Shown: piece by piece, positions 6,646 through 58,200 of the stretch
Layout: every line of letters starts with the position of its first letter
How positions within the stretch are numbered: the stretch's first letter is position 1
NCBI GenBank assembly: GCA_002269645.1
Contig: NIVC01000578.1
Location: 386,549 to 450,548, forward strand
Source: Macrostomum lignano
Taxonomy: Eukaryota
DNA length: 64,000 nucleotides
Direction: 5' to 3'
Program-made: the position numbers and the translations under genes
Notes under the pieces: generated by a model
Told to the model about the DNA's origin: nothing
What the model saw: only the letters and a program-made list of their open reading frames with translations
Database searches by the model: none

Positions 6646-8530
6646 TTATTGTGCATCCGGCAGCGCACTCATCTCATCAATATTTATTACGCACTCTCCG
6701 CTCTCAGTTTTGCTGACGCCAATGGCGACCGCTGTCGGATCTTTGTCGTCGGACTCCCGCCCCTGACGGCCAGTCTGAGCTGCAGTAGAAATGCCGCTCA
6801 GCAAGTGGTAGGCCAGCTCCAGCAGCTCGCAGACCGTGAGCAGGCTACAGCCGATGTACAGGCCGAGGAGGCCGCCGACGTCTGCAAGGAAGGCCGTCCA
6901 CGAGTAGGAGTAGGCAATGACAATCCTCGCTGACTGATGACTTTTCACGGCAATCTTGACCTCTATCATAGACTCCTCAACAAAGTTCTTGAACAGGAGC
7001 TTTTCATGAGCTGTGCAGTTGTCTAAAAAGAAGATTCAAATATGTACTTTGATAATTCCTTGTATATGCAAAACCTCGATGATAAAGATAACATTATTCA
7101 GGAAATAAATGGTTCTTGCCTAGCAGAATCCGTTTTGACAGTTTGACCAGTTGCTTAGTAGCAGGGCGGCCATAAAAAGAGTACTCCGGGTGTGCTCGAA
7201 GTCCGATGTCTTTATCATATTCTCTCACGAACCATTGGGCGAGCGGTCGGCCAGCACGCGGCCACTTCACGGACGTGGAGGTCGCAGTGTATTCATTATA
7301 TACACAAGGTTGCTCTTTCAAGCAATCGTTTACTACCTTCTGTGTGTGACTATCAATGAAATATCGAACCTCATGCAGGGATAAATTTGCAACTGAAAGC
7401 TTCTTTATGCCGATCTCGGTCATATTTTCGAATCTGGGTACGTTCCTCAGACTCCAAGGTTTCGGGTACAGGGAAAACACAAACTGGAACTTTTTCTGCA
7501 GCAGACTGTTCATTCTTGTGTAGAAGCAGGACGCTCTGCTGCTTTTAAACTCCTGTCTTTCACCAGTAAGTTGGTTCTGGAAGATGGCAACTTCCTGGTT
7601 GGGATTGCAGTACTTGCCGTAGAGTTCCGGACTATGAATTGTCTCTTCCATGCTGATAGTCACGTGATAAGATCTCCCAGCCGCCAGACTTAGCTTGGTC
7701 TCGTGCAGCATGGACGGGTACGTTCCCTTGGGAACCACCTGCAGAGTGAATCCCAGACTCTCCACGCTATGGTAGCGACGGTTGGCTTGCCAGAATTGAA
7801 ACGGAATGCTCTCGTTGAGCCACGGGTTCACTATTGGCCTGATCTCTGCTCCAGTATAAACTAACTCGGGAATGTGCGGATCAACAAACAGCATCGAATA
7901 GAGAACAGCTCGCTTGTAGCACAGGCTCTCTGAATTATTTTCCGGCACAGTCACCTTGAAGCAGATGCTGTTGTCCGGGTGTATGAAGACAGCTCGGTCG
8001 GCGTAGTCGATGTCCTCCGAGTAGGTCTGGTACAGGTTGAACGGCCACACAAGAAAGGACTGGTTCTCATGCTGCAGCAAGTTCTTGCTGAGGATTTGCA
8101 CTGGCATGGACAGCTGGATTCGGGCTACTCTTCGAAACGTGGCATCCTCTCCTCGAGTACAAAAGTCGGTGCTATTGGCGCAGTAGAGCTCGTCATATAG
8201 CTTGCTCAGCCTCTCGACTTTTTCATTTATTGCCTTAACTTCGGACTCCGTCAGTGTGTATGGAATGCTACCTGAGTATATTAGATTCGGGCAGAAGTAC
8301 AGGTCGGGAGTCTCGAACGACACCGCGTCAGACTCGTAGGTTTTGACCACGGAGATGGTGATGAGCCTGTCCACCATGTTCGACGCGCTTTTGCAGCACA
8401 GAATAAGAAATACAAAGAAGAGAAGCGTCCACATGACCCTCAGGACTGGCGACCTAGAACCGACTGCTCTGCTGATGCCATGAGCAGAGCTGCTAGCAAT
8501 GGCGTCCTCCACCGCTTTCCTTGCAGACAT
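6646..8530 (-). CDS. DEG/ENaC (amiloride-sensitive sodium channel family) subunit, ~595 aa, exons 8530-7120 and 7022-6646
   Basis: N-terminal SSAHG motif, hydrophobic TM1, large ectodomain, and TM2 FLADVGGLLGLYIGCSLLTVCELLE with the GxS filter. A 97-nt intron (7119-7023) with AG|GCAAGA donor and TTTTAG acceptor is phase 1 on both sides and joins the two ORFs in frame. Confidence 0.92.
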
Positions 8531-8899
8531 GCTCACTCCAGGCAAACCGGGGCTTTCTGAGAATCTTTCAGAGAATTCGACAGTTTAAGCCGGACTTTAT
8601 ACTGTAGCTTTATACCGAGTTTGAGCGCATTTTGTAGATGCATGCATAGTATGCAGCTTGTCCCACCAAGTTAGCAAAACTCATTCCACGTATACGAGAG
8701 TATCTACTGAATGCATGTAAATAGCTAAATTGCCCTTCAACTGTGGAGCAAAAAATTGAGCCTTTCCGGTTAAAAAAATAATCGAGTGTAATTATCTGAT
8801 GACAAACTGACTGGCATGGCAGCGGAATCAGTCTGGTTGCTGGCCCTTACAGACTCACAGACATGTTTAACATATGAATACGGAAGTCGCTTGGTGGCG

Positions 8900-12446: not shown

Positions 12447-15400
12447 TCAGAAACCAATGCGGATGTAATCCTGGCATGGTCGTTTGAAAGTCTCAGAGTA
12501 GCAAAGCAGCACCACTGCGTGATCATGCAGTGACTTTGTCAGCTCGATAAGCTCCTTCTCGATCGAATACCAATTCTTCTCGTCCTGCACCATCTCTGCA
12601 GTCTGATTCAACACATTTCTCGCATAGGCATCCATCGCATCGAATAGCGAGCGGAATTCATTGTGCACTGGTTTGGTAGCGATCACGTTCACTAAATCCA
12701 GCATTAGGCCGCGCAGATTTGTGAAGGCAGCTCGCAGTATCTTGTCAGCACTGTCTCGCCCCACCAGGGGCTCGGCCAACTTGGTTATCTCATTGCGCAG
12801 GTTCAGCAGCTGCTGGTTGATTTCCAGGGCTTTCGGTAATTCCTTCACCAAATTCGCTTTCCGAAACTTTTTCAGACTCTTCTTTGAGCTCCTGTCTTTG
12901 AGGTCACTCAGCAGCTCCTTGGATTCCACTATGTTGTGTGTACCAACTAACACGCACGTGAGCGTTCTACTGCTAGCGCACTCGGTCCATTGAGCTGGCA
13001 CTCGCTCACTTAACGGAAAGCCGGGCTCAAATAGGCGCATCTGCTCCTCGGAGATTCTGCCAACTGCCTGTGCAACTTCCAGCAAGCTCAACCTCAGAAA
13101 ACTCGGAGCTCGACCTAACTGAACTGCAGCGAACTTGTTGGAAAGCTCCATCACTGCAGAAGCCTGTTCGAGTAGAGCAGCTGAGATGTTCTTTGACTCT
13201 AGGATTTCCGTGCTCATCTCCTTGGAGCACATTGCATTATAGTACTGCATTAGTTGCTCAGAGCGATCGCGCCGCCTCTTGGTCCGATGACGGAAATCAC
13301 TTAGCTTTCCAAGCTGTTCGTGCAACGGAATTGAGTCATTTACGAACTTCTCCAGTTTTTTGGTCAAGGATAGAACAACGTTGTCCGGGCTTCTGATTTT
13401 CGGCGGGAATTTCTGACGAATCATGAGACTCTCTTTGCTTGTTTTCGAAATCTTCTCAAGAGTATCTGCGTGCGGCTTCAGCTCCATGCTTAGACTCGTG
13501 GCTTCACCCTCAGTTGTCAGGTCCAATTCCGGTTCTTGAATAAAAGCCGCCAGGACGTCTTCACCAGCTTTCGATCGGTCTGCGTAAGTCAGAAACAGCT
13601 TGCATTTCTCTTTTACTGTTTCGTAGTCGATCCATCGTGTTCGTAGCGCCTTCAGCGATGCAACTATGTTCACGACGCTCTGGCTACTAGATTTGCTCAG
13701 CCCTTGAATGAGAAGGTCCCAGTCTTGCTCTATGGAATTCATTAATTCCTTGATGTTTTTACGAGTGGATTTTATGTCACAAACAATGCAATGGAGCTCG
13801 AAGGCGAAGTCAGGAAGACACTTGGCGCGCAAAGAGAGGTCCTTTACAGCAGTCAATACTGAACAGATTGCGTTGTTTGCTCTGTCCGGATGCCACGAAC
13901 GTTTCGACTCGTCGCTCAGACGTTTGGCAATCTCTTGCGGCTGATTCACTCTGATGTTATAAACAGTAGCAACTTCTTTCTGCAATGACGTGCCCACAGT
14001 CATGAAAATTCCCGCCGCAGAAAGTGTCAGAAATGGCGCATAGGCTTTGGTGTTTATCGTCTGCTGAGCCCAGTTATTCATGGCATCGGGCTTGTCAATA
14101 TTTTCATCGAAGAGCGCCACCACACAGATCCGGCCAACGCCATTTGCTTCAAGCGGCAGCAGAAGGCTGATGCTGACGCCCACCGACGTGCAATTCTCGC
14201 TGGTCAGCTGTTCGTAGAAGCCTTTCTGCAGGTCTGGCTGACCCGCAGCTGCCATCCGCCTCCGCGGTTGGGCCTCCTGTTGCTCTGGTTCTCTGCGAAA
14301 GATTTAACTTTTCATTTTTGCATGGACAATTGAAATAGAAGGAAATGCATTGGCCGGATAGGAAATCTCCAGTTCTCTAGCACTGTTTGCATCCTACGAG
14401 AAAGCATCTTCCAAGCCACAAGTTTAATGCGTTTTTATAGAATGGTACCAGCGAGTTCCAGCAAAATTACAGTTGTCTCTGTTGGGGCATTTTTGAGCTG
14501 ATTTGAACGAAACAGACTCGCTTCGTTTTGACTTGGAAAGTCAAGACGGTGGAATTAGGTGAGGAGACATTGGGAGCTTAGTACTAAAACCCTGAAAACT
14601 TCCAATCTGGCCAATGCATTTTGCCATGAAGACCTGCATCCTACCCAGTAGAATTGTTACAATCGACAGTCTTTTCAAAACATAGCATAATGTATAAAGA
14701 GTATTTTCATATGAAACCGATTCATCAAAAAGTGCGCACTACGATTAATGCATGACTAAAACAAAACACAAAACACAGTGTCTATCTCGCTAATAGTCAC
14801 CCTGTCTGTCTAATGCTCTCCCTGTCTCTCTAATGCTCTCCCTGTCTCTCTAATGCTCTCCCTGTCTCTCTAATGCTCTCCCTGTCTCTCTAATGCTCTC
14901 CCTGTCTCTCTAATGCCCTCCCTGTCTCTCTAATGCTCTTCCTGTCTCGCTAATTGCAACGCTGGCTAATTGCAACGCTGTCTGTCTAATGCTCTCCCTG
15001 TCTCTCTAATGCTCTCCCTGTCTCTCTAATGCTCTTCCTGTCTCGCTAATTGCAACGCTGTCTGTCTAATGCTCTCCCTGTCTCTCTAATGCTCTCCCTG
15101 TCTCGCTAATAGCCACCCTGTCTCTCTAATGCTCTCCCTGTCTCTCTAATGCTCTCCCTGTCTCTCTAATGCTCTCCCTGTCTCTCTAATGCTCTCCCTG
15201 TCTCGCTAATAGCCACCCTGTCTGTCCAATGCTCTCCCTATCTCTCTAATGCTCTCCCTGTCTCTCTAATGCTCTCCCTGTCTCTCTAATGCTCTCCCTG
15301 TCTCTCTAATAGCCACCCTGTCTGTCTAATGCTCTCCCTGTCTCTCTAATGCTCTCCCTGTCTCTCTAATGCTCTCCCTGTCTCTCTAATGCTCTCCCTA

Positions 15401-18400
15401 TCTCGCTAATAGCAACCCTGTCTGTCTAATGCTCTCCCTGTCTCTCTAATGCTCTCCCTGTCTCTCTAATGCTCTCCCTGTCTCTCTAATGCTCTCCCTA
15501 TCTCGCTAATAGCCACCCTGTCTGTCTAATGCTCTCCCTATATCGCTAATAGCCACCCTGTCTGTCTAATGCTTTCCCTGTCTCTCTAATGCTCTCCCTG
15601 TCTCTCTAATGCTCTCCCTGTCTCTCTAATGCTCTCCCTATCTCGCTAATAGCCACCCTGTCTGTCTAATGCTCTCCCTATCTCGCTAATAGCCACCCTG
15701 TCTGTCTAATGCTCTCCCTGTCTCTCTAATGCTCTCCCTGTCTCTCTAATAGCCACCCTGTCTGTCTAATGCTCTCCCTGTCTCTCTAATGCTCTCCCTG
15801 TCTCTCTAACGCTCTCCCTGTCTCTCTAATGCTCTCCCTGTCTCTCCAATGCTCTCCCTGTCTCTCTAATGCTCTCCCTGTTTCTCTAATGCTCTCCCTA
15901 TCTCGCTAATAGCCACCCTGTCTGTCTAATGCTCTCCCTATATCGCTAATAGCCACCCTGTCTGTCTAATGCTCTCCCTGTCTCTCTAATGCTCTCCCTG
16001 TCTCTCTAATGCTCTCCCTGTCTCTCTAATGCTCTCCCTATCTCGCTAATAGCCACCCTGTCTCTCTAATGCTCTCCCTATCTCGCTAATAGCCACCCTG
16101 TCTGTCTAATGCTCTCCCTGTCTCGCTAATAGCCACCCTGTCTGTCTAATGCTCTCCCTGTCTCGCTAATGCTCTCCCTGTCTCTCTAATGCTCTCCCTA
16201 TCTCGCTAATGCTCTCCCTGTCTCTCTAATGCTCTCCCTATCTCGCTAATAGCCACCCTGTCTGTCTAATGTTCTCCCTGTCTCTCTAATGCTCTCCCTG
16301 TCTCTCTAATGCTCTCCCTGTCTCTCTAATGCTCTCCCTATCTCGCTAATAGCCACCCTGTCTGTCTAATGCTCTCCCTATATCGCTAATAGCCACCCTG
16401 TCTGTCTAATGCTCTCCCTGTCTGTCTAATGCTCTCCCTGTCTCTTTAATGCTCTCCCTGTCTCTCTAATGCTCTCCCTATCTCGCTAATAGCCACCCTG
16501 TCTGTCTAATGCTCTCCCTGTCTCTCTAATGCTCTCCCTGTCTCTCTAATGCTCTTCCTGTCTCGCTAATTGCAACGCTGTCTGTCTAATGCTCTCCCTG
16601 TCTCTCTAATGCTCTCCCTGTCTCGCTAATAGCCACCCTGTCTGTCTAATGCTCTCCCTATCTCGCTAATAGCCACCCTGTCTGTCTAATGCTCTCCCTG
16701 TCTCTCTAATGCTCTCCCTGTCTCTCTAATGCTCTCCCTGTCTCTCTAATGCTCTCCCTGTCTCTCTAATGCTCTCCCTGTCTCGCTAATAGCCACCCTG
16801 TCTGTCTAATGCTCTCCCTGTCTCTCTAATGCTCTCCCTGTCTCTCTAATGCTCTCCCTATCTCGCTAATAGCCACCCTGTCTCTCTAATGCTCTCCCTG
16901 TCTCGCTAATAGCCACCCTGTCTGTCTAATGCTCTCCCTATCTCGCTAATAGCCACCCTGTCTGTCTAATGCTCTCCCTATATCGCTAATAGCCACCCTG
17001 TCTGTCTAATGCTCTCCCTATCTCTCTAATGCTCTCCCTGTCTGTCTAATGCTCTCCCTGTCTCTCTAATGCTCTCCCTATCTCGCTAATAGCCACCCTG
17101 TCTCTCTAATGCTCTCCCTATCTCGCTAATAGCCACCCTGTCTGTCTAATGCTCTCCCTGTCTCGCTAATAGCCACCCTGTCTGTCTAATGCTCTCCCTG
17201 TCTCGCTAATAGCCACCCTGTCTGTCTAATGCTCTCCCTATCTCTCTAATGCTCTCCCTGTCTCTCTAATGCTCTCCCTGTCTCTCTAATGCTCTCCCTG
17301 TCTCTCTAATGCTCTCCCTGTCTCTCTAATGCTCTCCCTACCTCGCTAATAGCCACCCTGTCTCTCTAATGCTCTCCTTGTCTCTCTAATGCTCTCCCTG
17401 TCTCTCTAATGCTCTCCCTATCTCGCTAATAGCCAACCTGTCTGTCTAATGCTCTCCCTGTCTCTCTAATGCTCTCCCTGTCTCTCTAATGCTCTCCCTG
17501 TCTCTCTAATACTCTCCCTATCTCGCTAATAGCCACCCTGTCTCTCTAATGCTCTCCCTGTCTCTCTAATGCTCTCCCTGTCTCTCTAATGCTCTCCCTG
17601 TCTCTCTAATACTCTCCCTATCTCGCTAATAGCCACCCTGTCTCTCTGATGCTCACCCTGTCTCTCTAATGCTCACCCTGTCTCTCTAATGCTCACCCTG
17701 TCTGTCTAATGCTCTCCCTGTCTCTCTAATGCTCTCCCTGTCTCTCTAATGCTCTCCCTATCTCGCTAATAGCCACCCTGTCTCTCTAATGCTCTCCCTA
17801 TCTCGCTAATAGCCACCCTGTCTGTCTAATGCTCTCCCTATCTCGCTAATAGCCACCCTGTCTGTCTAATGCTCTCCCTGTCTCGCTAATAGCCACCCTG
17901 TTTGTCTAATGCTCTCCCTATATCGCTAATAGCCACCCTGTCTGTCTAATGCTCTCCCTATCTCTCTAATGCTCTCCCTGTCTGTCTAATGCTCTCCCTG
18001 TCTCTCTAATACTCTCCCTGTCTCGCTAATAGCCACCCTGTCTGTCTAATGCTCTCCCTATCTCGCTAATAGCCACCCTGTCTGTCTAATGCTCTCCCTG
18101 TCTGTCTAATACTCTCCCTGTCTCTCTAATGCTCTCCCTGTCTCTCTAATGCTCTCCCTATCTCGCTAATAGCCACCCTGTCTGTTTAATGCTCTCCCTG
18201 GCTCTCTAATGCTCTCCCTGTCTCTCTAATGCTCTCCCTATCTCGCTAATAGCCACCCTGTCTGTCTAATGCTCTCCCTGTCTCTCTAATGCTCTCCCTG
18301 TCTCTCTATGCTCTCCCTGTCTCTCCAATACTCTCCCTATCTCGCTAATAGCCACCCTGTCTGTCTAATGCTCTCCCTGTCTCTCTAATGCTCTCCCTGT

Positions 18401-21400
18401 CTCTCTAATGCTCTTCCTGTCTCGCTAATAGCAACGCTGTCTGTCTAATGCTCTCCCTGTCTCTCTAATGCTCTCCCTGTCTCTCTAACGCTCTCCCTGT
18501 CTCTCTAATGCTCTCCCTGTCTCTCCAATACTCTTCCTATCTCTCTAATGCTCTCCCTGTCTCTCTGATGCTCACCCTGTCTCTCTAATGCTCACCCTGT
18601 CTCTCTAATGCTCTCCCTATCTCGCTAATAGCCACCCTGTCTCTCTAATGCTCTCCCTATCTCGCTAATAGCCACCCTGTCTGTCTAATGCTCTCCCTAT
18701 CTCGCTAATAGCCACCCTGTCTGTCTAATGCTCTCCCTGTCTCGCTAATAGCCACCCTGTTTGTCTAATGCTCTCCCTATATCGCTAATAGCCACCCTGT
18801 CTGTCTAATGCTCTCCCTATCTCTCTAATGCTCTCCCTGTCTGTCTAATGCTCTCCCTGTCTCTCTAATGCTCTCCCTGTCTCGCTAATAGCCACCCTGT
18901 CTGTCTAATGCTCTCCCTATCTCGCTAATAGCCACCCTGTCTGTCTAATGCTCTCCCTGTCTGTCTAATGCTCTCCCTGTCTCTCTAATGCTCTCCCTGT
19001 CTCTCTAATGCTCTCCCTATCTCGCTAATAGCCACCCTGTCTGTCTAATGCTCTCCCTGTCTCTCTAATGCTCTCCCTGTCTCGCTAATAGCCACCCTGT
19101 CTGTCTAATGCTCTCCCTATCTCGCTAATAGCCACCCTGTCTGTCTAATGCTCTCCCTGTCTCTCTAATGCTCTCCCTGTCTCTCTAATGCTCTCCCTGT
19201 CTCTCTAATGCTCTCCCTGTCTCTCTAATGCTCTCCCTGTCTCGCTAATAGCCACCCTGTCTGTCTAATGCTCTCCCTGTCTCTCTAATGCTCTCCCTGT
19301 CTCTCTAATGCTCTCCCTATCTCGCTAATAGCCACCCTGTCTCTCTAATGCTCTCCCTGTCTCGCTAATAGCCACCCTGTCTGTCTAATGCTCTCCCTAT
19401 CTCGCTAATAGCCACCCTGTCTGTCTAATGCTCTCCCTATATCGCTAATAGCCACCCTGTCTGTCTAATGCTCTCCCTATCTCTCTAATGCTCTCCCTGT
19501 CTCTCTAATGCTCTCCCTGTCTCTCTAATGCTCTCCCTGTCTCTCTAATGCTCTCCCTGTCTCTCTAATGCTCTCCCTATCTCGCTAATAGCCACCCTGT
19601 CTCTCTAATGCTCTCCTTGTCTCTCTAATGCTCTCCCTGTCTCTCTAATGCTCTCCCTATCTCGCTAATAGCCACCCTGTCTGTCTAATGCTCTCCCTGT
19701 CTCTCTAATGCTCTCCCTGTCTCTCTAATGCTCTCCCTGTCTCTCTAATGCTCTCCCTATCTCGCTAATAGCCACCCTGTCTGTCTAATGCTCTCCCTGT
19801 CTCTCTAATGCTCTCCCTGTCTCTCTAATGCTCTCCCTGTCTCTCTAATACTCTCCCCATCTCGCTAATAGCCACCCTGTCTCTCTGATGCTCACCCTGT
19901 CTCTCTAATGCTCACCCTGTCTCTCTAATGCTCACCCTGTCTGTCTAATGCTCTCCCTGTCTCTCTAATGCTCTCCCTGTCTCTCTAATGCTCTCCCTAT
20001 CTCGCTAATAGCCACCCTGTCTCTCTAATGCTCTCCCTATCTCGCTAATAGCCACCCTGTCTGTCTAATGCTCTCCCTGTCTCTCTAATGCTCTCCCTGT
20101 CTCTCTAATGCTCTCCCTGTCTCTCTAATACTCTCCCTATCTCGCTAATAGCCACCCTGTCTGTCTAATGCTCTCCCTGTCTCTCTAATGCTCTCCCTGT
20201 CTCTCTAATGCTCTCCCTGTCTCTCTAATACTCTCCCTATCTCGCTAATAGCCACCCTGTCTCTCTGATGCTCACCCTGTCTCTCTAATGCTCACCCTGT
20301 CTCTCTAATGCTCACCCTGTCTGTCTAATGCTCTCCCTGTCTCTCTAATGCTCTCCCTGTCTCTCTAATGCTCTCCCTATCTCGCTAATAGCCACCCTGT
20401 CTCTCTAATGCTCTCCCTATCTCGCTAATAGCCACCCTGTCTGTCTAATACTCTCCCTATCTCGCTAATAGCCACCCTGTCTGTCTAATGCTCTCCCTGT
20501 CTCGCTAATAGCCACCCTGTTTGTCTAATGCTCTCCCTATATCGCTAATAGCCACCCTGTCTGTCTAATGCTCTCCCTATCTCTCTAATGCTCTCCCTGT
20601 CTGTCTAATGCTCTCCCTGTCTCTCTAATGCTCTCCCTGTCTCGCTAATAGCCACCCTGTCTGTCTAATGCTCTCCCTATCTCGCTAATAGCCACCCTGT
20701 CTGTCTAATGCTCTCCCTGTCTGTCTAATGCTCTCCCTGTCTGTCTAATGCTCTCCCTGTCTCTCTAATGCTCTCCCTATCTCGCTAATAGCCACCCTGT
20801 CTGTCTAATGCTCTCCCTGGCTCTCTAATGCTCTCCCTGTCTCTCTAATGCTCTCCCTATCTCGCTAATAGCCACCCTGTCTGTCTAATGCTCTCCCTGT
20901 CTCTCTAATGCTCTCCCTGTCTCTCTATGCTCTCCCTGTCTCTCTAATACTCTCCCTATCTCGCTAATAGCCACCCTGTCTGTCTAATGCTCTCCCTGTC
21001 TCTCTAATGCTCTCCCTGTCTCTCTAATGCTCTTCCTGTCTCGCTAATAGCAACGCTGTCTGTCTAATGCTCTCCCTGTCTCTCTAATGCTCTCCCTGTC
21101 TCTCTAACGCTCTCCCTGTCTCTCTAATGCTCTCCCTGTCTCTCCAATACTCTCCCTATCTCGCTAATAGCCACCCTGTCTCTCTGATGCTCACCCTGTC
21201 TCTCTAATGCTCACCCTGTCTCTCTAATGCTCACCCTGTCTCTCTAATGCTCTCCCTGTCTCTCTAATATTCTCCCTGTCTCTCTAATGCTCTCCCTATC
21301 TCGCTAATAGCCACCCTGTCTCTCTAATGCTCTCCCTATCTCGCTAATAGCCACCCTGTCTGTCTAATCCTCTCCCTATCTCGCTAATAGCCACCCTGTC

Positions 21401-23008
21401 TGTCTAATGCTCTCCCTGTCTCGCTAATAGCCACCCTGTCTGTCTAATGCTCTCCCTATATCGCTAATAGCCACCCTGTCTGTCTAATGCTCTCCCTATC
21501 TCTCTAATGCTCTCCCTGTCTCTCTAATGCTCTCCCTGTCTCTCTAATGCTCTCCCTGTCTCGCTAATAGCCACCCTGTCTGTCTAATGCTCTCCCTGTC
21601 TCTAATGCTCTCCCTGTCTCTCTAATGCTCTCCCTGTCTCTCTAATGCTCTCCCTATCTCGCTAATAGCCACCCTGTCTGTCTAATGCTCTCCCTGTCTC
21701 TCTAATGCTCTCCCTGTCTCTCTAATGCTCTTCCTGTCTCGCTAATGCTCTCCCTGTCTCTCTAATGCTCTCCCTGTCTCTCTAACGCTCTCACTGTCTC
21801 TCTAATGCTCTCCCTGTCTCTCCAATACTCTCCCTATCTCGCTAATAGCCACCCTGTCTCTCTGATGCTCACCCTGTCTCTCTAATGCTCTCCCTGTCTC
21901 TCTAATGCTCACCCTGTCTCTCTAATGCTCAACCTGTCTCTCTAATGCTCTCCCTTGTCTCTCTAATGCTCAGCCTGTCTCTCTAATGCTCTCCCCGTCT
22001 CTCTAATGCTCTCCCCGTCTCCCTAATGCTCTCCCTGTCTCTCTAATGCTCTTCTCATCTCGATAATAGTCACCCTGTTTCTCTAACACGGGCGTAGGAG
22101 CGGAGAATGTGGCGATGTATCCCCCAAACAGCCTAAAAAGTTTTTGAGAAATCAGGTTTTTCTTTACGGATGGCCAACCCCCCCCCCTCTCGAGAAAATT
22201 TCAGGCTACGCGCCTGATCTCTACTGAATCTCCCTGTTTCTTCAACAAGTTAAAGGAACTTGTAGGTTGAATCTCCTATCAGACGCATAGCAGTCTCATA
22301 TGCGTACTGGAATCTTGGAAGGAGAAATATTCACCATTTTTCGTGCTAAAATGTAAAATATGAAAATCTCGCAAATGCTTTTTTATTTAGTCTTCAAAAA
22401 AATCCCGCTTGTTGTGTGCCTCTGGTTGGACAAAACATGAATGCGCATTTTATTCGGTAACGAAAGAAAAGCTTTTGTTTAAGAACTCACCGTCTAGACC
22501 AGAAACTCACTGCCTCTTCGGGATACATAGACACGTCGTAGTCGAAATTTTTGCCGCGGGGCGTGCAGTAGACCAGGCAGCCGTAGGACTGGGCTGTAAA
22601 ATAGTGGGTGCAGTTGGTGTCCGATTTGTTTTGTTGAATCAGAACAGTGCAGCGCGGCATCGAGCTCAAGCGGTCTCGATATGCAGTGCGGCGTTCCATG
22701 TAGTGAAACACTTTCTTGGCCTCAAGGCTCAGAGAATTGCTAAGACAAAGCTGTGGCAATTCTTTATCAGTTTTGTGATAATATCGAGTCCAGTTGATTG
22801 CCCCCACAACTCTCTCCTGAAGACGCAAACGCTCGTGCTGGATGAAGTTGTTAGTGTCGCTGTCCCTCAAACGTCGAAGAATTTTATCGTAGGCTTCCTT
22901 AGACATATCCGGCCCTGGTTCCAGACAGTGCAGCGTTGCCTTCAGGCTGACTCTGATTTTGGCCGCTAGCCGCTCTCTTTCACTTCTCCAGGTGCGCTGC
23001 TCAGCCAT
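12447..23008 (-). CDS. Uncharacterised two-exon protein, copy 1 (~787 aa; exons 23008-22491 and 14292-12447)
   Basis: CACCATGG start at 23008. The donor CG|GTGAGT (22490) and acceptor TTTCGCAG|A (14293) are both phase 2, giving ...FWSR-R-EPEQQEAQPRRRMAAAG... The same sites are conserved in copy 2. No family recognised. Confidence 0.8.
14781..22086. repeat. 20-bp intronic satellite, ~365 units, with variant units and higher-order duplication
   Basis: Main unit CTAATGCTCTCCCTGTCTCT; common variants CTAATGCTCTCCCTATCTCG and CTAATAGCCACCCTGTCTGT. Confidence 0.97.
22087..22216. mobile_element. Small MITE-like element in the intron (CAGGCGCGTAGC-type termini)
   Basis: CACGGGCGTAGG at the left and GCTACGCGCCTG at the right are imperfect inverted repeats. 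A homologue lies at 36747-37117. Confidence 0.55.
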
Positions 23009-23478: not shown

Positions 23479-25234
<1,756 letters not shown>

Positions 25235-31284: not shown

Positions 31285-34200
31285 TCAGAAACCAATGCGG
31301 ATGTAATAATCGTACTGGCAGTGTCGTTTAAAAGTTTCAGAGCAGCAAAACAGCACCAGTGCGTTAGCCTGCAGTGACTCTGTCAGCTCGATAAGCTCCT
31401 TTTCGATCGAATCCCAATTTTTCTCGTCCTGCATCATCTTTGCAGTCCGATTCAACACGTATCTCACATAGGCATCCAACGCCTTGATTAGCGAGCGGAA
31501 TTCATTGTGCACTGGTTTGGTAGCGACCAAGTTCATAAAATTCGGTGTTAGGCCGCGCAGCCTTGCGAAGGCAGCTCGCAGTATCTTGTCAGCACTGTCT
31601 GGCCCCACCAGGGACTCGGCCAACTTGGTTATCTCATCGCGCAGGTTCAGCAGCTGCTGGTTGATTTCCAGGGCGTTCGGTAATTCCTTCACCAAATTCG
31701 CATCCCGAAACTCATTCAGACTCTTCTTTGAGCTCCTGTCTTTGAGGTCACTCAGCAGCTCCTTGGATTCCACTATGCTGTGTGTACCAACTAACACGCA
31801 CCTGAGCGTTCTACTGCTAGCGCACTCGGTCCATTGAGCTGGCACTCGCTCACTTAACGGAAAGCCGGGCTCAAATAGGCGCATCTGCTCCTCGGAGATT
31901 CTGCCAACTGCCTGTGCAACTTCCAGCAATTTCGATCCCTCGGAACTCGGAACTGGATCCAAAGGAATTGCAGGCAACCTGTCGGAAAGCTCAAACACTA
32001 CGTAAGCCTGTTCGAGTAGAGCAGTTGAGATGTTCTTTGACTCTAGGATTTCCGTGCTCATCTCCTTGGAGCACATTGCATTATAGTACTGCATTAGTTG
32101 CTCAGAGCGATCGCGCCGCCTCTTGGTCTGATGACGGAAATCACTTAGCTTTCCAAGCTGTTCGTGCAACGGAATTGAGTCATTTACGAACTTCTCCAGT
32201 TTTTTGGTCAAGGATAGAACAACGCTGTCCGGGCTTCTGCTTTTCGGCGGGAATTTCTGACGAATCATGAGACTCTCTTTGCTTGTTTTCGAAATCTTCT
32301 CAAGAGTATCTGCGTGCGGCTTCAGCTCCATGCTTAGACTCGTGGCTTCACCCTTAGTTGTCAGGTCCAATTCCGGTTCTTGAATAAAAGCCGCCAGGAC
32401 GTCTTCACCAGCTTTCGCTCGGTCTGCGTAAGTCAGAAACAGCTTGCATTTCTCTTTTACTGTTTCGTAGTCGATCCATCTTGTTCGTAGCGCCTTCAGC
32501 GATGCAACTATGTTCATGACGCTCTGGCTGCTAGATTTGCTCAGCCCTTGAATGAGGAGGTCCCAGTCTTGCTCTATGGAATTCATTAATTCCTTGATGT
32601 CTTTACGAGTGGATTTTATGTCACAAACAATGCAATGGAGCTCGAAGGCGAAGTCAGGAAGACACTTGGCGCGCAAAGAGAGGTCCTTTACAGCAGTCAA
32701 TACTGAACAGATTGCGTTGTTTGCTCTGTCCGGATGCCACGAACGTTTCGACTCGTCGCTCAGACGTTTGGCAATCTTTTGCGGCTGAATTACTCTGGTG
32801 TTATAAACAGTAGCAACTTCTTTCTGCAATGACGTGCCCACAGTCATGAAAATTCTCGCCGCAGAAAGTGTCAGAAATGGCGCATAGGCCCTGGTGTTTA
32901 TCGTCTGCTGAGCCCAGTTATTCATGGCATCGGGCTTGTCAATATTTTCATCGAAGAGCGCCACCACACAGATCCGGCCTTCGCCTTTTGCTTCAAGCGG
33001 CAGCAGAAGGCTGATGCTGACGCCCACCGACGTGCAATTCTCGCTGGTCAGCTGTTCGTAGAAGCCTTTCTGCAGGTCTGGCTGACCCGCAGCTGCCATC
33101 CGCCTCCGCGGTTTCGCCTCCTGTTGCTCCGGTTTTCTGCGAAAGATTTAACTTTTCATTTTGCTTAAAGCTGCATTTTTTGCATAGACAACTGAGATAG
33201 AAGGAAATGCATTGTCTAGCAATGTGACGATCATTATTCACATTTTTAATGCAGAACAATCCATTACTGCAAGCAATGGATAAATAACCGGCGCTCGCCA
33301 GACAATCGTTGTCACGCACTGGACCACTGATTCTTTGCATTGTTTTTCTGTTTGACGATCCTACAGACAATGCATTGTTTGTAGTAATGGATTGTCCTGC
33401 ATTAAAAATGTGAATAATGATCGTCAAATTGCTAAACAATGCAATATCTGTAGGATCGTCAAACAGAAAAACAATGCAAAGAATCAGCGGTCGCAGCACG
33501 TGACAACGATTTGTCTATGGCTCGCCTAGCGGCGCTCGCCAGACAATCGTTGTCACGCACTGGGACCGCTGATTATTTATCCATTGGCCGGATAGTCTAA
33601 TTTAGTTCTCTAGCACTGTTTGCATCCTACGAGAAAGCATCTTCCAAGCTAGAAATTTAATGCGTTTTTATAAAATGGTACCAGCGAGTTCCGGCAAAAT
33701 TACAGTTGTCTCTGTTGGGGCATTTTAGAGCTGATTTGAACGAAACACACTCGCTTCATTTTTTGACTTTGAAAGTCAAGACGGTGGAATTAGGTGAGGA
33801 GACATTGGGAGCTTAGTACTAAAACCCTGAAAATTCCCAATCTGGCCAATGCATTTTGCCATGAAGACTGCATCCTACCCAGTAGAATTGTTACAATCGA
33901 CAGTCTTTTCAAAACATAGCATAATGCATAAAGAGTATTTTCGTATGAAACCAATTCATCAAAAAGTGCGCACTACGATTAATGCATGACTAAAACAAAA
34001 CACAAAACACAGTGTCTATCTCGCTAATAGTCACCCTGTCTGTCTAATGCTCTCCCTGTCTCTCTAATGCTCTCCCTGTCTCTCTAATGCTCTCCCTGTC
34101 TCTCTAATGCTCTCCCTGTCTCTCTAATGCTCTCCCTGTCTCTCTAATGCTCTCCCTGTCTCTCTAATGCTCTCCCTGTCTCTCTAATGCTCTCCCTGTC

Positions 34201-37200
34201 TCTCTAATGCTCTCCCTGTCTCTCTAATGCTCTCCCTGTCTCTCTAATGCTCTCCCCGTCTCTCTAATGCTCTCCCTGTCTCTCTAATGCTCTCCCTGTC
34301 TCTCTAATAGCCACCCTGTCTCTCTAATGCTCTCCCTGTCTCTCTAATGCTCTCCCTGTCTCTCTAATGCTCTCCCTGTCTCTCTAATGCTCTCCCTGTC
34401 TCTCTAATGCCCTCCCTGTCTCTCTAATAGCCACCCTGTCTCTCTAATAGCCACCCTGTCTGTCTAATGCTCTCCCTGTCTCTCTAATAGCCACCCTGTC
34501 TCTCTAATAGCCACCCTGTCTGTCTAATGCTCTCCCTGTCTCTCTAATGCTCTCCCTGTCTCTCTAATAGCCACCCTGTCTGTCTAATGCTCTCCCTGTC
34601 TCTCTAATAGCCACCCTGTCTGTCTAATGCTCTCCCTGTCTCGCTAATAGCCACCCTGTCTGTCTAATGCTCTCCCTGTCTCTCTAATACTCTCCCTGTC
34701 TCTCTAATGCTCTCCCTGTCTCTCTAATGCTCTCCCTGTCTCTCTAATGCTCTTCCTGTCTCGCTAATTGCAACGCTGTCTGTCTAATGCTCTCCCTGTC
34801 TCTCTAATGCTCTCCCTGTCTGTCTAATGCTCTCCCTGTCTGTCTAATGCTCTCCCTGTCTCTCTAATGCTCTCCCTGTCTCGCTAATAGCCACCCTGTC
34901 TGTCTAATGCTCTACCTGTCTGTCTAATGCTCTCCCTGTCTCTCTAATGCTCTCCCTGTCTGTCTAATGCTCTCCCTGTCTCTCTATTGCTCTCCCTGTC
35001 TCTCTAATGCTCTCCCTGTCTGTCTAATGCTCTCCCTGTCTCTCTAATGCTCTCCCTATCTCGCTAATAGCCACCCTGTCTGTCTAATGCTCTCCCTGTC
35101 TCTCTAATGCTCTCCCTGTCTCTCTAATGCTCTCCCTGTCTCTCTAATGCTCTCCCTGTCTCTCTAATGCTCTCCCTGTCTCTCTAACGCTCTCCCTGTC
35201 TCTCTAATGCTCTCCCTGTCTCTCTAATGCTCTCCCTGTCTCTCTAATGCTCTCCCTGTCTCTCTAATGCTCTCCCTATCTCGCTAATAGCCACCCTGTC
35301 TGTCTAATGCTCTCCCTGTCTCTCTAATGCTCTCCCTGTCTCTCTAATGCTCTCCCGGTCTCGCTAATAGCCACCCTGTCTGTCTAATGCTCTCCCTATC
35401 TCTCTAATGCTCTCCCTGTCTCTCTAATGCTCTCCCTGTCTCTCTAATGCTCTCCCTGTCTCGCTAATAGCCACCCTGTCTGTCTAATGCTCTCCCTGTC
35501 TCTCTAATGCTCTCCCTGTCTCTCTAATGCTCTCCCTGTCTCTCTAATGCTCTCCCTGTCTCTCTAATGCTCTCCCTATCTCGCTAAAAGCCACCCTGTC
35601 TCTCTAATGCTCTCCCTATCTCGCTAATGCTCTCCCTGTCTCTCTAATAGCCACCCTGTCTGTCTAATGCTCTCCCTGTCTCTCTAATGCTCTCCCTGTC
35701 TCTCTAATGCTCTCCCTGTCTTTCTAATGCTCTCCCTGTCTCTAATGCTCTCCCTGTCTCTCTAATGCTCTCCCTGTCTCTCTAATAGCCACCCTGTCTC
35801 TCTAATGCTCTCCCTGTCTCTCTAATGCTCTCCCGGTCTCTCTAATACTCTCCCTATCTCTCTAATGCTCTCCCTGTCTCTCTAATGCTCTCCCTGTCTT
35901 TCTAATGCTCTCCCTGTCTCTAATGCTCTCCTTTGTCTCTCTAATGCTCTCCCTGTCTCTCTAATGCTCTCCCTGTCTCTCTAATAGCCACCCTGTCTGT
36001 CTAATGCTCTCCCTATCTCTCTAATGCTCTCCCTGTCTCTCTAATAGCCACCCTGTCTGTCTAATGCTCTCCCTATCTCTCTAATGCTCTCCCTGTCTCT
36101 CTAATAGCCACCCTGTCTCTCTAATAGCCACCCTGTCTGTCTAATGCTCTCCCTGTCTCTCTAATGCTCTCCCTGTCTCTCTAATACTCTCCCTATCTCG
36201 CTAATAGCCACCCTGTCTGTCTAATGCTCTCCCAGTCTCTCTAATGCTCTCCCTGTCTCTCTAATGCTCTCCCTGTCTCTCTAATGCTCTCCCTGTCTCT
36301 CTAATGCTCTCCCTGTCTCTCTAATGCTCTCCCTGTCTCTCTAATGCTCTCCCTGTCTCTCTAATGCTCTCCCTGTCTCTCTAATAGCCACCCTGTCTGT
36401 CTAATGCTCTCCCTGTCTCTCTAATGCTCTCCCTATCTCTCTAATGCTCTCCCTGTCTCTCTAATGCTCTCCCTGTCTCTCTAATGCTCTCCCTGTCTCT
36501 CTAATAGCCACCCTGTCTGTCTAATGCTCTCCCTGTCTCTCTAATGCTCTCCCTGTCTCGCTAATAGCCACCCTGTCTCTCTGATGCTCACCCTGTCTCT
36601 CTAATGCTCACCTTAGTCTCTCTAATGCTCTCCCTGTCTCTCTAATGCTCTCCCCGTCTCTCTAATGCTCACCCTTGTCTCTCTAATGCTCTCCCTGTCT
36701 CTCTAATGCCCTCCCCATCTCGCTATTAGTCACCCTGTTTTTCTAAAAGGGGCGTAGGCAACAGAAGATGTGGTGATGTATCCCCCGAACAGCCTAAAAA
36801 AGTTTTTAAGAAATCAGGTTTTTTACGGATGGCCAACCCCCCTTCGTATAAAATTTCTCTCCCTAGGGGCGGCCAATCCACCCCAAATAAATTTCGACTC
36901 TCCCTAGGGGCGGCCAATCCACCCCAAATAAATTTCGACTCTCCCTAGGGGCGGCCAATCCACCCCAAATAAATTTCGACTCTCCCTAGGGGCGGCCAAT
37001 CCACCCCAAATAAATTTCGACTCTCCCTAGGGGCGGCCAATCCACCCCAAATAAATTTCGACTCTCCCTAGGGGCGGCCTATTTCCCCTCTCAAGAAAAT
37101 TTCAGGCTACGCGCCTGCTCTCTACTGAATCTCCCTGTTTCTTCATCAAGTTAAAGGAACTTGTAGGTTGAATCTCCTATCAGACACATAGCAGTCTCAT

Positions 37201-37920
37201 ATGCGTACTGGAATCTTGGAAGGAGAAATATTCACCATTTTTCGTGCTAAAATGTGAAAAATGAAAATCTCACAAACGCCTTTTTTGTTTAGCATCCAAA
37301 TGAAATCCCGCTTGTTGTGTGCCTCTGGTTGGACAAAACATGAATGCACATTTTATTCGGTAACGAAAGAAAAGCTTTTGTTTAAGAACTCACCGTCTAG
37401 ACCAGAACCTCACTGCCTCTTCGGGAACTTCAGACACGCGGCGGTAGATGCCCATGATGCTTTCGATGCGGGGCGTGCAGTAGACCAGGCAGCCGTAGAC
37501 TTCGGCAGTAAAATGGTGGGTGCAGCTGGTGTCCGATAGGTTTTGGTGAATCAGAACAGTGCTGCACGGCATCGAGCTCAAGCGGTCTCGATATGCAGTG
37601 CGGCGTTCCATGTAGTGAAACACGTACTTGGCCACAATGCTCAGAGAATTGCTAAGACAAAGCTGTGGCAATTCTTTATCAGTTTCGTGATAATATCGAG
37701 TCCTGTTGATTGCCCTCACAATTCTCTCCTGAAAATGCGAGCGCTCCCCCTGGAGGAAGTTGTTAGTATCGCTGCGCCACAAACGTCGAAGAATTTTATC
37801 GTAGGTTTTTTTAGACACATCCGGCCTTGGGTCCACACAGTGCAGCGTTGCCTTCAGGCTGGCTGTGATTTTGGCCTCCAGCCGCTCTCTCTCGCTTCTC
37901 CAGGTGAGCTGCTCAGCCAT
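31285..37920 (-). CDS. Uncharacterised two-exon protein, copy 2 (~792 aa; exons 37920-37394 and 33136-31285)
   Basis: Paralogue of 12447-23008. CACCATGG start, donor CG|GTGAGT (37393), acceptor TTTCGCAG|A (33137), both phase 2. The ORF is intact, with only in-frame indels. Confidence 0.8.
33209..33586. repeat. Copy-2-specific ~375-bp intron insertion built from interleaved inverted repeats
   Basis: Absent at the equivalent copy-1 site (GGAAATGCATTGGCCGGATAG, ~14341). X 33209-33278 / X' 33375-33444; Y 33300-33370 / Y' 33447-33517; plus a partial direct Y at 33531-33573. Confidence 0.8.
34015..36746. repeat. 20-bp intronic satellite, ~136 units (homologue of 14781-22086)
   Basis: Same units and the same boundary sequences as in copy 1. 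Confidence 0.97.
36747..37117. mobile_element. MITE-like element homologous to 22087-22216, carrying an internal 41-bp repeat (5 copies plus a partial, 36857-37079)
   Basis: Termini AGGGGCGTAGG / GCTACGCGCCTG; internal unit CTCTCCCTAGGGGCGGCCAATCCACCCCAAATAAATTTCGA. Confidence 0.6.
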
Positions 37921-38639: not shown

Positions 38640-39103
38640 TATACTAGTACTGCTGTTGTTTTTGTTGTTATTATTGTTGTTGGCTGTTACTGTTGTTGTT
38701 GTTGCTGTTGCTGCTGTTGTTTTAGTTTAGTTTTAGTTTTTAGCAAACTGGGAAGTCGCTCCATCCACCTCTCTAACTCTTTCCTTAAACTCCGCCCAGA
38801 GTTTTCGACCAGCGTCGGGGCTGCTGCACAGGTCTGCGAGGCACGTGATACCGAGGATGCGGCGAGCCTTTTCTATCTTGTCGCACTCCAGAACCACGTG
38901 GGTGTTAGTCTCCGGTGCCCTCATACAGAGTGTGCAGGTATCGGAGTCGTCCAAACCCAGCCGGTTAGCATAGGCTCTAAGACCTGTGTTGTGTCCTACT
39001 CTGAATTTGGTGTACTCAGCTCTCTCATACGCAGGCCACATGCACTCCGTGCGGCAGTTTGGGCCGGTGGTTCCGTAGGTGTCCCGGGAGCGGTCATGGC
39101 TCC
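38640..39103 (-). mobile_element. 3' end of a non-LTR retrotransposon (C-terminal CCHC zinc knuckle) with a simple-repeat tail
   Basis: KFRVGHNTGLRAYANRLGLDDSDTCTLCMRAPETNTHVVLEC matches the GH...CxxC...ET..H...C pattern of I/R1/Jockey-type ORF2 ends. After the stop come TAAAA and (CAA/CAG)n. Confidence 0.8.
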
Positions 39104-39403
<300 letters not shown>

Positions 39404-55260: not shown

Positions 55261-58200
55261 ATGCAATCGAAAAATCACCAAGCAGACGCAGCTAAGCTGA
55301 CGGCACCGACCAAAGAGATGAGCGAGGAGGAAACTGGCAGCAATGGCGGCGGCGGCGGCAGCAGCAGCAGCAGCAGCAGCGGCAGCCGCAGCCGCAGCAG
55401 CGCCTTCAAGCACATGAAGCTGAAGCTGCACCTCGCAGCCACTGGAGAGGACATGGAGGAGGCAAAGCAGGAGCCCGACGCGAAAAGCGGAACGGACGAC
55501 TCCGACAAGGTGCCCACCACCGGCGACGTCAGCGACAACTCCGACGACTCGGAGGTGAGCAACCCGAGCCAGCTGCTCAACCGGATTCTCAACGAGTTCG
55601 GCGTGTCATTCGTGCGCGACAACTCGAGCTGCAAGCTGGCCACCTGCGGCCTGAAGCTCTGCTCCCAGCAGCTGCTGCCGCCGATGGACGACAGCGACGA
55701 CCAGCCGTCGGAGGCGGCTTCGGAAGCGGCTGCAGCGTCAGCGGCTGCCGCGGCCTCAGCGGACGGCGGCAGCGACAACCCGGACGGGTCGCTCTACTAC
55801 ACCAAGAAGTTTCATGAGAAATTCGCCAGCGTGAACCGCAAGCGCAAGCTGGAGGCACCGGGACTCCCGCTGAACAACTTCGTGCGCTTCTACAGCGGCG
55901 GGGAGCACGCCGGCGCCATGGAGGAGCTCGGCGACGCCCTGGTCGAGACAATGTCCAGCACCAGCACGCTCAACGATGACACCGCGAGTCTGAAGGATTC
56001 GACTGCGGGCTCCGAGGCGGATGCCTCTTCGATGCCGCTGGCTTCCTCTGCGGGGGCGAAGGCAGCGGCCGCAGCTGCCGCGGTCGCCTCGGGGGAGCCG
56101 TGCGCTGTGTGCGAGGACCGAGCCACCGGCCTGCACTACGGAGTCATGACCTGCGAGGGGTGAGCAGGGTTCGATCTTGAGTGATGATGCGTGTTGAGGG
56201 TCCCAGAGAGCCGGGACTCCCCACCGCAGAGGGCTTTGTTCCGTAGCAGACAGGTCAGGCAGCTTTCTCAAAGCCGCCACCCCTCCCCGCAGCTGCAAGG
56301 GCTTCTTCAAGCGCACCGTGCAGAACCGCCGAATCTACGGGTGCGGCTTCGGCCAGGGCTGCGACGTGCAGCTGCAGCGCCGGAACAACTGCCAGTTCTG
56401 CCGCTTCAGGAAGTGCCTGGACACCGGCATGGTTGTGGAAGGTACGGAAGAGATAGCTGACGGTGAGACAGCTGACGGTGAGATAGCTGACGTGAGATAG
56501 CTGACGGTGAGATAGCTGACGGTGAGACAGCTGACGGTGAGATAGCTGACGGTGAGACAGCTGACGGTGAGATAGCTGACTGAGATAGCTGACGGTGAGA
56601 CAGCTGACGTGAGATAGCTGACGGTGAGATAGCTGACGGTGAGACAGCTGACGGTGAGATAGCTGACGTGAGATAGCTGACGGTGAGACAGCTGACGGTG
56701 AGACAGCTGACGGTGAGATAGCTGACGGTGAGACAGCTGACGGTGAGATAGCTGACGTGAGATAGCTGACGGTGAGACAGCTGACGGTGAGACAGCTGAC
56801 GGTGAGATAGCTGACGGTGAGATAGCTGACGTGAGATAGCTGACGGTGAGATAGCTGACGGTGAGATAGCTGACGGTGAGATAGCTGACGGTGAGACAGC
56901 TGACGCCCATGAAGGCCAACCTGTAAGGCACAGAGACAGAGACTGTACATGCCTGACGAGGAGAAAGTCAGAGCTTTGTACACCCTGTGTGAGTTCGAGC
57001 CTGCTTGCTCAAGGGTCACCGCCACTCTGAATGGGCCTGACTGATCCTGCATTGATGCACCCGCCGCCTCTTTCAGCGGTCCGCGAGAACCACATGCCGG
57101 GCGGCAGAAACTCGAAGGCTGTCTACGGAAAACTATTTGTAAGTCTATTCTCCTGACTCTGACTGGGGTTTGTCACAGCATGACTGACTCTGACTGGGGT
57201 TTGTCACAGCATGACTGACTCTGACTGGGGTTTGTCACAGCATGACTGACTCTGGCTGGGGTTTGTCACAGCATGACTGACTCTGACTGAGGTTTGTCAC
57301 AGCATGACTGACTCTGACTGGGGTTTGTCACAGCATGACTGACTCTGACTGAGGTTTGTCACAGCGTGACTGACTCTGACTGGGGTTTGTCACAGCATGA
57401 CTGACTCTGACTGGGATTTGTCACAGCATGACTGACTCTGACTGAGGTTTGTCACAGCATGACTGACTCTGACTGGAGTTTGTCACAGCATGACTGACTC
57501 TGACTGAGGTTTGTCACAGCGTGACTGACTCTGACTGGGGTTTGTCACAGCATGACTGACTCTGACTGGGATTTGTCACAGCATGATTGACTCTGACAGA
57601 CATTTGTCACAGCATGACTGACTCAGCTTTGCCGCCTACTGCAGGCGTCAAGCGCAAAGCAGCCGCGCTCTGAGGCGGGCGGAGACTCGACCAGACAGCA
57701 GCAGGCCGGACCTTCGGCGGCAGCCGATGAAGCCGCCGCGACAACGCAGCAGCCGCAGAGCCAGAAGCCGCAGCAGCAGAAGCCGCCGTCCAGACCGACG
57801 GGTCACGCGTCGCGAGGCGGCAAGACGGGCCGCCAGCAGCCGTCAGCGGCCGCTTCAAAGAAAGCGGCGGCTGCTGCGGCTGGCTTCTCGTACGGACCGC
57901 CGCCGCTGCCGCCGCCGCCGCCACAGCAGCCGCCGCAGCCGCCGTTCAGCGCTGGGTTGACTCGAGCGCCGCAACCACCGCTGCTGCCACCGCCGAGGGA
58001 TGGCGCCTTCGGCATGATGGGGCATCTGCAGCAGCCGCCGCGAATGCCGTCAGGCCTGGGCCTGCCCGACCCTGCGTTCTTGGCGGCCGCCACCGCCGGC
58101 CACCGCTACTTCCAGACACCGGCGCCCCCGCCGCTGATTGGCTACTCAGCCGCCTCTGCTTCCATGAGCCCCGGCCCGAGCGGCGCCAGGCTTCAACAGG

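Follow-up and report, generated by a model that had tools for sequence, protein, structure and literature searches.

Hypervariable regions of immune, allorecognition and reproductive proteins carry many alleles and have a dN well above dS, with dS itself at ordinary values. Peaks of divergence are also known from paralogues under interlocus gene conversion, such as exon 5 of the red/green opsin pair in humans and the RHCE/RHD pair (PMC3924837). In a homogenized pair, a divergence peak that includes the silent sites is what one expects to see where a functional difference is protected (PMC3924837). Here we compare with both a short divergent stretch, referred to as the patch, in two tandem paralogues (copies A and B) of the flatworm Macrostomum lignano. 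The patch is probably an unconverted island of old divergence in a pair that short-tract interlocus gene conversion has otherwise made alike.

The window, i.e., the whole stretch of 64,000 nucleotides analyzed here, is identical to part of the sequence of contig NIVC01000578.1 of the M. lignano assembly Mlig_3_7. It contains copies A and B as two-exon tandem paralogues, both on the minus strand and both with a phase 2 intron with canonical GT-AG ends. In window coordinates, with a slash at the splice junctions, their parts are as follows.

12447 to 14292, minus strand: copy A exon 2 (1846 nt with its stop codon; acceptor TTTCGCAG/A).
14293 to 22490, minus strand: copy A intron (8198 nt; largely made up of a 20-bp satellite, 14785-22052, ~364 units).
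22491 to 23008, minus strand: copy A exon 1 (518 nt; begins ATGGCTGAG; donor CG/GTGAGT, phase 2).
31285 to 33136, minus strand: copy B exon 2 (1852 nt with its stop codon).
33137 to 37393, minus strand: copy B intron (4257 nt; the same 20-bp satellite as in the copy A intron, 34019-36715, ~135 units).
37394 to 37920, minus strand: copy B exon 1 (527 nt).

The full-length products have 787 (A) and 792 (B) amino acids. A first-pass annotation of the window had called the reading frame that holds the patch an exon, correctly so, as the exon-2 open reading frames (ORFs; 12447-14255 with 602 amino acids in A, 31285-33099 with 604 in B) belong to the second exon of a two-exon gene. The GenBank gene models were built from RNA-seq-guided transcript assemblies (PMC5730564), and the models BOX15_Mlig030318 (A type) and Mlig002417 (B type) read straight through the patch. 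The chance that ORFs of 787 to 792 codons stay open after 159 to 174 random substitutions is ∼0.001, and when A and B are compared all indels in the coding sequence are in frame, while the flanks are full of indels. Because the intron is a canonical GT-AG intron of phase 2, the models derive from RNA-seq and the ORFs have been kept open, the gene is real: a transcribed orphan with a maintained ORF. A literature search with the identifiers Mlig030318 and Mlig002417 found no paper, and an Rfam scan of the whole window gave no matches.

Among 5.8 billion clustered proteins and 1.84 billion representatives, we found no relative of the A/B proteins outside M. lignano, and neither a Pfam domain nor a relative in the PDB matched them. 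UniRef labels two of the database proteins, P0003 and P0008, as DHC_N1 (dynein heavy chain N-terminal region 1). This label was not reproduced with the Pfam model, which at E values up to 1 matched none of P0001, P0003, P0008 and the two window ORFs. The A/B gene is a fast-evolving orphan of ∼790 amino acids restricted to Macrostomum. AlphaFold2 predicted, with low confidence, an all-helical protein (mean pLDDT of 38.7 without an alignment and 37.0 with an alignment of four paralogues). In both models the patch has a pLDDT of ∼30 and lies across a helix-break-helix; predictions of this quality are too poor to be used for mapping it.

The patch and its immediate surroundings are located as follows.

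13086 to 13181, minus strand: patch, form A (codons 359-390 of the exon-2 ORF; residues 544-575 of the 787-aa protein; AALLEQASAVMELSNKFAAVQLGRAPSFLRLS).
31930 to 32025, minus strand: patch, form B (residues 547-578 of the 792-aa protein; TALLEQAYVVFELSDRLPAIPLDPVPSSEGSK; second half proline-rich).
13182 to 13284, minus strand: 103 nt of perfect A/B identity, directly 5' of the patch in gene orientation.
12959 to 13085, minus strand: 127 nt of perfect A/B identity, directly 3' of the patch in gene orientation.

A plus-strand reading of the patch coordinates gives stops and was ruled out; the feature lies on the minus strand. The first-pass annotation had counted 18 amino acid changes and 1 silent-only change in 32 codons, as well as ∼14 differences in the preceding ∼355 residues. 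Codon-by-codon comparison on the minus strand bears out both counts: 26 of the 96 nucleotides of the patch differ between A and B, with 18 codons changing the amino acid, a single silent-only codon (380, TTA/TTG) and 13 identical ones, and the 358 codons before it contain 20 nucleotide and 14 amino acid differences. When the 92 A/B differences were shuffled over the 1809 aligned nucleotides, the maximum in any 96-nt window averaged 10.7 and never exceeded 18 in 5000 shuffles, versus 26 observed, so that the clustering in the patch goes beyond chance (permutation p<2e-4). The changes from form A to form B are radical, with a gain of acidic residues and of four prolines in the stretch LPAIPLDPVP. 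The identical tracts of 103 and 127 nt that bracket the patch are homogenized tracts.

For a wider comparison, we gathered eight exon-2 copies from five contigs, the window included, via the members of the protein clusters and the contigs that encode them. All copies are from M. lignano and from the assembly of one inbred line, and a sample of one species and one line leaves the direction and timing of conversion unpolarized.

Window: copies wA and wB, the pair compared in the first-pass annotation.
NIVC01003545.1: copies cB then cA, in the same tandem order as in the window.
NIVC01003544.1 (L004): copies dB then dA, in the same tandem order as in the window.
L005: copy eA, a contig-end copy that resembles c, with frameshifting indels.
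L006: copy fA, a contig-end copy that resembles d, with frameshifting indels.

The long-read assembly Mlig_3_7 represents a neopolyploid and is redundant; it has three homeologous subgenome copies ∼2% apart and 36% of its length in chimeric scaffolds (PMC10733133). The scaffold join between A and B in the window may itself be chimeric; an (ACT)n array lies at 23479-25234 of the window, and the tandem A/B arrangement is seen on two contigs besides the window. Since the B-then-A tandem recurs on three contigs, which stand for at least two additional copies (homeologous or haplotype), the A/B duplication is shown to be older than the recent genome duplication of the species. Within the patch, the eight copies fall into three haplotypes (wA, A2 and B) and one recombinant. 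The A2 group consists of cA, dA, eA and fA, with small differences among its members, and differs from wA at 6 nt of the patch. The patch sequence is identical in all B copies (100% in contigs c and d), and A and B show fixed differences at 21 to 23 sites. The patch is dimorphic and not, as the first-pass annotation had described it, hypervariable.

The divergence between A and B varies strongly along exon 2, also at synonymous sites. We obtained a dS of 0.023 for codons 1-358, 0.21 for the patch, 0.00 for codons 391-460 and 0.06 for the C terminus, a ∼10-fold variation in which the patch lies ∼9-fold above the sequence upstream of it. The excess of synonymous differences inside the patch reaches significance (Fisher p 0.001-0.005), and silent and replacement sites are raised together inside it, as is characteristic of a conversion island. 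The non-coding 3' flank, 150 to 850 nt past the stop codon, has a gap-free divergence of 27.4%, the same level as the 27% of the patch, and the intron sequences of A and B upstream of exon 2 can hardly be aligned at all. Most of the gene (codons 1-358 and 391-460, with dS of 0.00 to 0.023) is far below the 27% of this flank, as expected of a pair under conversion.

A comparison of the three lineages gave a similar picture. The first 1074 nt of exon 2 are star-like among wA, A2 and B, with 10 sites fixed between A and B, 11 specific to wA and 16 specific to A2; here, outside the patch, the A copies are as near to B as to each other. In the patch, by contrast, the 21 to 23 A/B-fixed sites stand against 6 between the A copies. 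The first-pass annotation had also proposed a check for recombination, and this gave a clear result: three-lineage site patterns are clustered along exon 2, with 60 runs versus 85 ± 5.3 expected (p<1e-4, 10000 permutations). The runs are 12 to 120 nt long, suggesting that conversion tracts are short.

One such tract can be seen directly. Nine informative sites in a row (nt 1020-1107, counted from the ATG) match B exactly in copies dA and fA, which have the A state from nt 1117 onward; the patch of both thereby contains 42 nt at 100% identity to B. In dA the converted stretch occupies 15542-15629 of L004 (outer bounds 15494-15638). Copy cA, a near-twin of dA and fA (0.8% different overall), is A-type throughout, and eA is likewise not identical to B there. 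The tract is accordingly bounded in the way expected of gene conversion, with a copy matching the other paralogue where its nearest relative differs. At the protein level, the chimera is represented by P0004, TALLEQAYVVFELS/NKFAEVQLGRVPSFLRSS, a B-like part followed by an A-like part (the slash marking the switch). The chimera in dA and fA is a visible conversion tract of 88 to 145 nt, by its pattern from B to A, with one end inside the patch, and a clean flatworm example of short interlocus conversion.

Because the dS peak, the agreement of patch and flank divergence, the mosaic of runs and the visible tract all point the same way, we favor the reading of the patch as an island that conversion has left standing. 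In this old tandem pair, which is older than the genome duplication, recurrent interlocus conversion in short tracts (tens to ∼150 nt) would have homogenized most of exon 2, synonymous sites included, as the pattern of differences indicates. The outcome would be a mosaic whose few remaining short blocks retain the original A/B difference, the patch being the longest and densest of them. All site classes in the patch are at about the neutral level, and it behaves like a weakly constrained protein segment. The first-pass annotation had considered conversion from a distant paralogue as one origin of the patch. Conversion does appear to be the key process, although in the opposite sense: divergence would have been erased on both sides of the patch, and the patch would retain the old divergence.

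The patch is not the sole divergent part of the gene. Codons 461-604 contain 34 amino acid differences between A and B, and the number of fixed A/B differences per 40 nt reaches 14 in the patch, 14 at the end of exon 1 and 11 in a C-terminal block. At least two further islands therefore have a local density comparable to that of the patch. The exon-1 island covers the last ∼60 nt of this exon and includes a 9-nt indel in addition to its fixed differences, while the one in exon 2 is located as follows.

12683 to 12722, minus strand: second dense exon-2 island (nt 1534-1573 from the ATG, coding sequence columns ∼2098-2137; peptides LMLDLVNVI in A versus LTPNFMNLV in B; copy B equivalent at 31527-31566).

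Moreover, the A2 group has a difference cluster of its own at nt 253-283, where wA is identical to B.

Two causes could have let the island persist. Under a neutral cause, short tracts would combine with heteroduplex rejection, with conversion halting where a block has already passed 20% mismatch; under a selective one, converted haplotypes would be purged because the two forms do different things. We lean slightly toward the neutral cause. Conversion must have missed ∼70 to 96 nt over nearly all the time since the duplication. A strictly neutral island also had to survive an early phase in which the copies were still similar enough for conversion, and this early convertible phase favors either a degree of protection by selection or a complex mutation at the outset.

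The alternative that survives best refines the conversion mosaic rather than replacing it, differing in what made the island persist: the two forms would give A and B different properties, and haplotypes with an overwritten patch core would have been removed, as in the opsin exon 5 or RHCE/RHD type. We regard this as possible but less likely than not. Selection against conversion that preserves an A/B difference predicts the same peak, raised dS included, and is a weaker form of the selection reading of the first-pass annotation. A peak of exactly this shape is what theory leads one to expect where a selected site is exposed to conversion (PMC3924837), and the patch equals the unconverted flank in divergence although two tracts of complete identity enclose it. 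The A/B difference is retained on every contig with the copies, the proline and acidic changes of form B are radical, the nominal dN/dS in the patch is 1.8, and the sole observed invasion, that in dA and fA, stops short of the densest core (nt 1117-1170). On the other hand, this dN/dS is based on 4.5 synonymous changes, does not exceed 1 significantly (Fisher p 0.29-0.60) and drops to 0.66 between the two A lineages. Amino acid constraint is also weak gene-wide (dN/dS ∼1-2 in every segment, about 1 to 1.5 for the gene, 1.45 overall with p=0.09), there are several islands and not one, and the sequenced inbred line carries the chimeric patch on two contigs.

A more specific form of this idea is rather doubtful, in our view, though worth stating. 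The patch, chiefly its core codons 373-390, might be a specificity-determining surface segment, protected from conversion since before the genome duplication, and so constitute a functional split between A and B. If this were true, the two proteins could have different partners, e.g., in a reproductive or conflict context, and the gene-wide dN/dS of at least 1 with preserved ORFs would mean ongoing adaptive turnover.

Localized selection of the kind seen in immune, allorecognition or reproductive proteins, whether positive or, as put forward in the first-pass annotation, diversifying, would have copies of the same age throughout and a patch that evolves faster. In its favor, 18 of 32 residues differ in a lineage-restricted, fast-evolving orphan, and the dN of the patch (0.38) exceeds that of exon 1 (0.14; p=0.0006) and nominally also the dS of the patch. 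However, the ∼9-fold rise of dS in the same 96 nt is not produced by protein-level selection alone, patch divergence equals the non-coding level, and the eight copies carry few variants. The first-pass annotation had named a dN/dS not above 1 with more copies as refuting this reading, and on that measure it is not supported; the low dS of the flanking sequence needs conversion anyway. Since the dN/dS of the patch is not significant, is lower still between the A lineages and is accompanied by an enrichment of synonymous changes, accelerated amino acid substitution by positive selection is neither needed nor shown. We regard pure selection as improbable.

The first-pass annotation had also raised conversion from a distant paralogue. 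In such an import, a conversion tract of ∼100 nt from a third, distant paralogue or pseudogene would have entered A or B. The length of the patch resembles that of the conversion tracts at this locus (88 to 145 nt) and its boundaries are sharp. No donor was found, however: the 5.8 billion clustered and 1.84 billion representative proteins contain no further relative, and neither patch form has a second match in the window or in five further loci. Both forms are common to the contigs that carry the copies, so any import predates the genome duplication, and each of the other islands would need a donor of its own, which makes this origin very improbable.

Two local mutational processes might have contributed to the patch. 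An alignment of codons 386-390 with -2/+2 gaps reduces 9 mismatches to 4 plus two indels, but wins only with cheap gap penalties (76-77 versus 74); a compensated frameshift there is a possible contributor to 5 of the 18 changes. Form B has a tandem GTTCCGA GTTCCGA at the 3' end of the patch. A quasi-palindrome links 13130-13147 with 13303-13320 (15/18 complementary in form A and, counted by eye, 12/18 in form B), and a template switch at it could explain at most 3 of the 26 differences. A micro-inversion was rejected, as form A and the reverse-complemented form B share a local match of 5 nt at best.

Finally, a consensus error or a short retained intron can be practically dismissed: although 36% of Mlig_3_7 lies in chimeric scaffolds (PMC10733133) and L005 and L006 carry frameshifting indels, both forms recur base for base on several contigs (form A in the window and four others; form B in three, or at least two independently, as wB and dB are possibly one copy assembled twice), form B is also exact in P0003 and P0008, which come from sources other than the contigs of this assembly, the patch is free of indels and in frame in all six good copies, and the two forms share no frame-preserving GT...AG pair, with the transcript-based models continuous across it. 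The first-pass annotation was thus right to treat the patch as real sequence.

These observations have a practical side. In the redundant assembly of the neopolyploid M. lignano, where differences between paralogues cluster, a conversion mosaic should be the first reading, and dS should be checked before selection is invoked. The analysis also flags a transcribed orphan pair whose ORFs are maintained at a dN/dS of ∼1 or more. As transgenesis and RNAi exist for M. lignano, selective protection of the island is experimentally approachable.

Compared with hypervariable proteins, the patch shares the short stretch of variable amino acids in an otherwise similar, fast-evolving, lineage-specific protein. 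It differs from them in having three haplotypes, a dS raised as much as dN and a level of divergence equal to that of non-coding sequence. The opsin and RH pairs (PMC3924837) are closer, since there, too, near paralogues are mostly homogenized, a short diverged segment is bracketed by homogenized sequence and linked silent sites are raised. The opsin and RH peaks contain functionally characterized residues, and models and population data back selection against conversion there; unlike them, the A/B pair has a dN/dS that is not significant, several peaks and one copy with its patch partly overwritten. In the copepod Tigriopus californicus, the GOT1 paralogues (PMC3728101) encode a conserved enzyme of known function and were studied in multiple populations, whereas A and B are an orphan pair from one inbred line. 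The tandem HMA4 copies of Arabidopsis halleri (bioRxiv 10.1101/2025.10.29.685298), whose mosaic divergence is attributed to interlocus gene conversion, consist of homogenized and diverged blocks like A and B; that work, on another organism and gene, models selection on a new copy, while ours is a comparison of sequences. The phenomenon, concerted evolution with an island of divergence, is already known, and the A/B pair is a further example of it, in an orphan gene of a neopolyploid flatworm.

Judged from the aligned contigs, divergence between homeologous copies is highly uneven across the 20-kb locus, since the B copies are near-identical and the A copies are not. Over 1.85 kb of exon 2 (window 31285-33136), the B copies of three contigs (the window and the loci L002 and L004) differ at 0 to 2 positions, and at 8 positions over ∼3.1 kb when their flanks are included, while the A copies diverge by 2.5 to 6% per segment. 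Assembly redundancy may account for part of this unevenness, because the B copies of the window and of NIVC01003544.1 are possibly one genomic copy that was assembled twice. The features that bear on the locus and its surroundings are as follows (window coordinates unless a locus is named):

7094-8545, minus strand: 483-amino-acid ORF with a match to PF00858, amiloride-sensitive sodium channels (E = 5e-13)
13130-13147 and 13303-13320: 18-nt inverted repeat, 83% complementary, with one arm within the copy A patch
13973-14003 (equivalent; L001 ∼14795-14825, nucleotides 253-283 from the ATG): substitution cluster private to the A-type copies of the other contigs
14785-22052 (∼364 units) and 34019-36715 (∼135 units): 20-bp satellite TCTCTCTAATGCTCTCCCTG, filling the introns of A and B
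23479-25234: perfect (ACT)585 microsatellite
38775-39113, minus strand: fragment of a retroelement (zf-RVT, a weak match at E = 0.008)
55261-56163, plus strand: ORF with a terminal match to PF00105, the C4 zinc finger of nuclear receptors (E = 8e-7)
L005 1-1876 and L006 ∼380-2253: further exon-2 copies at contig starts

The two contig-start copies carry frameshifting single-base indels and are annotated only as fragments of 246 and 85 amino acids (P0005 and P0006). Given that the L005 copy resembles haplotype c and the L006 copy haplotype d, both are probably not pseudogenes but contig ends that are redundant and poorly polished. The sodium-channel ORF, which is the downstream neighbor of the gene pair, is 98 to 100% identical in all contigs over most of its length, with the exception of L006, where one tile falls to 93.6%. 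At the other end of the window, the zinc-finger ORF lies in the GC-rich (57 to 68%) right-hand part, its end aligning to the start of the zinc-finger model.

Upstream of copy B exon 1 lies the retroelement fragment, which is fused into the gene model of P0003, a B-type protein from a different source whose model, in addition, omits 124 exon-2 residues. P0003 and P0008 (UniRef A0A1I8GBJ1 and A0A1I8J233) are named “DHC_N1 domain-containing protein” by their source, a label that current Pfam does not support, with no DHC_N1 match at E values up to 1.

Within exon 2, a second cluster of 8 substitutions within 31 nt (FMTVGTSLQKEV to FAAVGRSLRNEI) is found only in the A-type copies other than that of the window, which here agrees with B. 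This pattern is consistent with another short conversion tract, from B into the window's copy A, or with an old A block that survives only in the remaining A-type copies. At the patch itself, a template switch at the inverted repeat is a possible contributor, because three of the A/B differences increase the palindromicity of form A; form B agrees with the repeat arm at just 12 of the 18 positions (counted by eye). The intron satellite shows an extreme strand skew (GC skew of about -0.55).

In a tiled comparison with NIVC01003544.1, identity falls across the (ACT)585 microsatellite, from 99.2 to 100% on its B side (window ∼34000-25500, most tiles at 100.0%) to ∼93 to 98% on its A side (window 23000 downwards). 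It follows from this drop that the window represents either a haplotype that has recombined or a chimeric scaffold whose parts were joined at the microsatellite; in Mlig_3_7, chimeric scaffolds make up 36% of the assembly length (PMC10733133).
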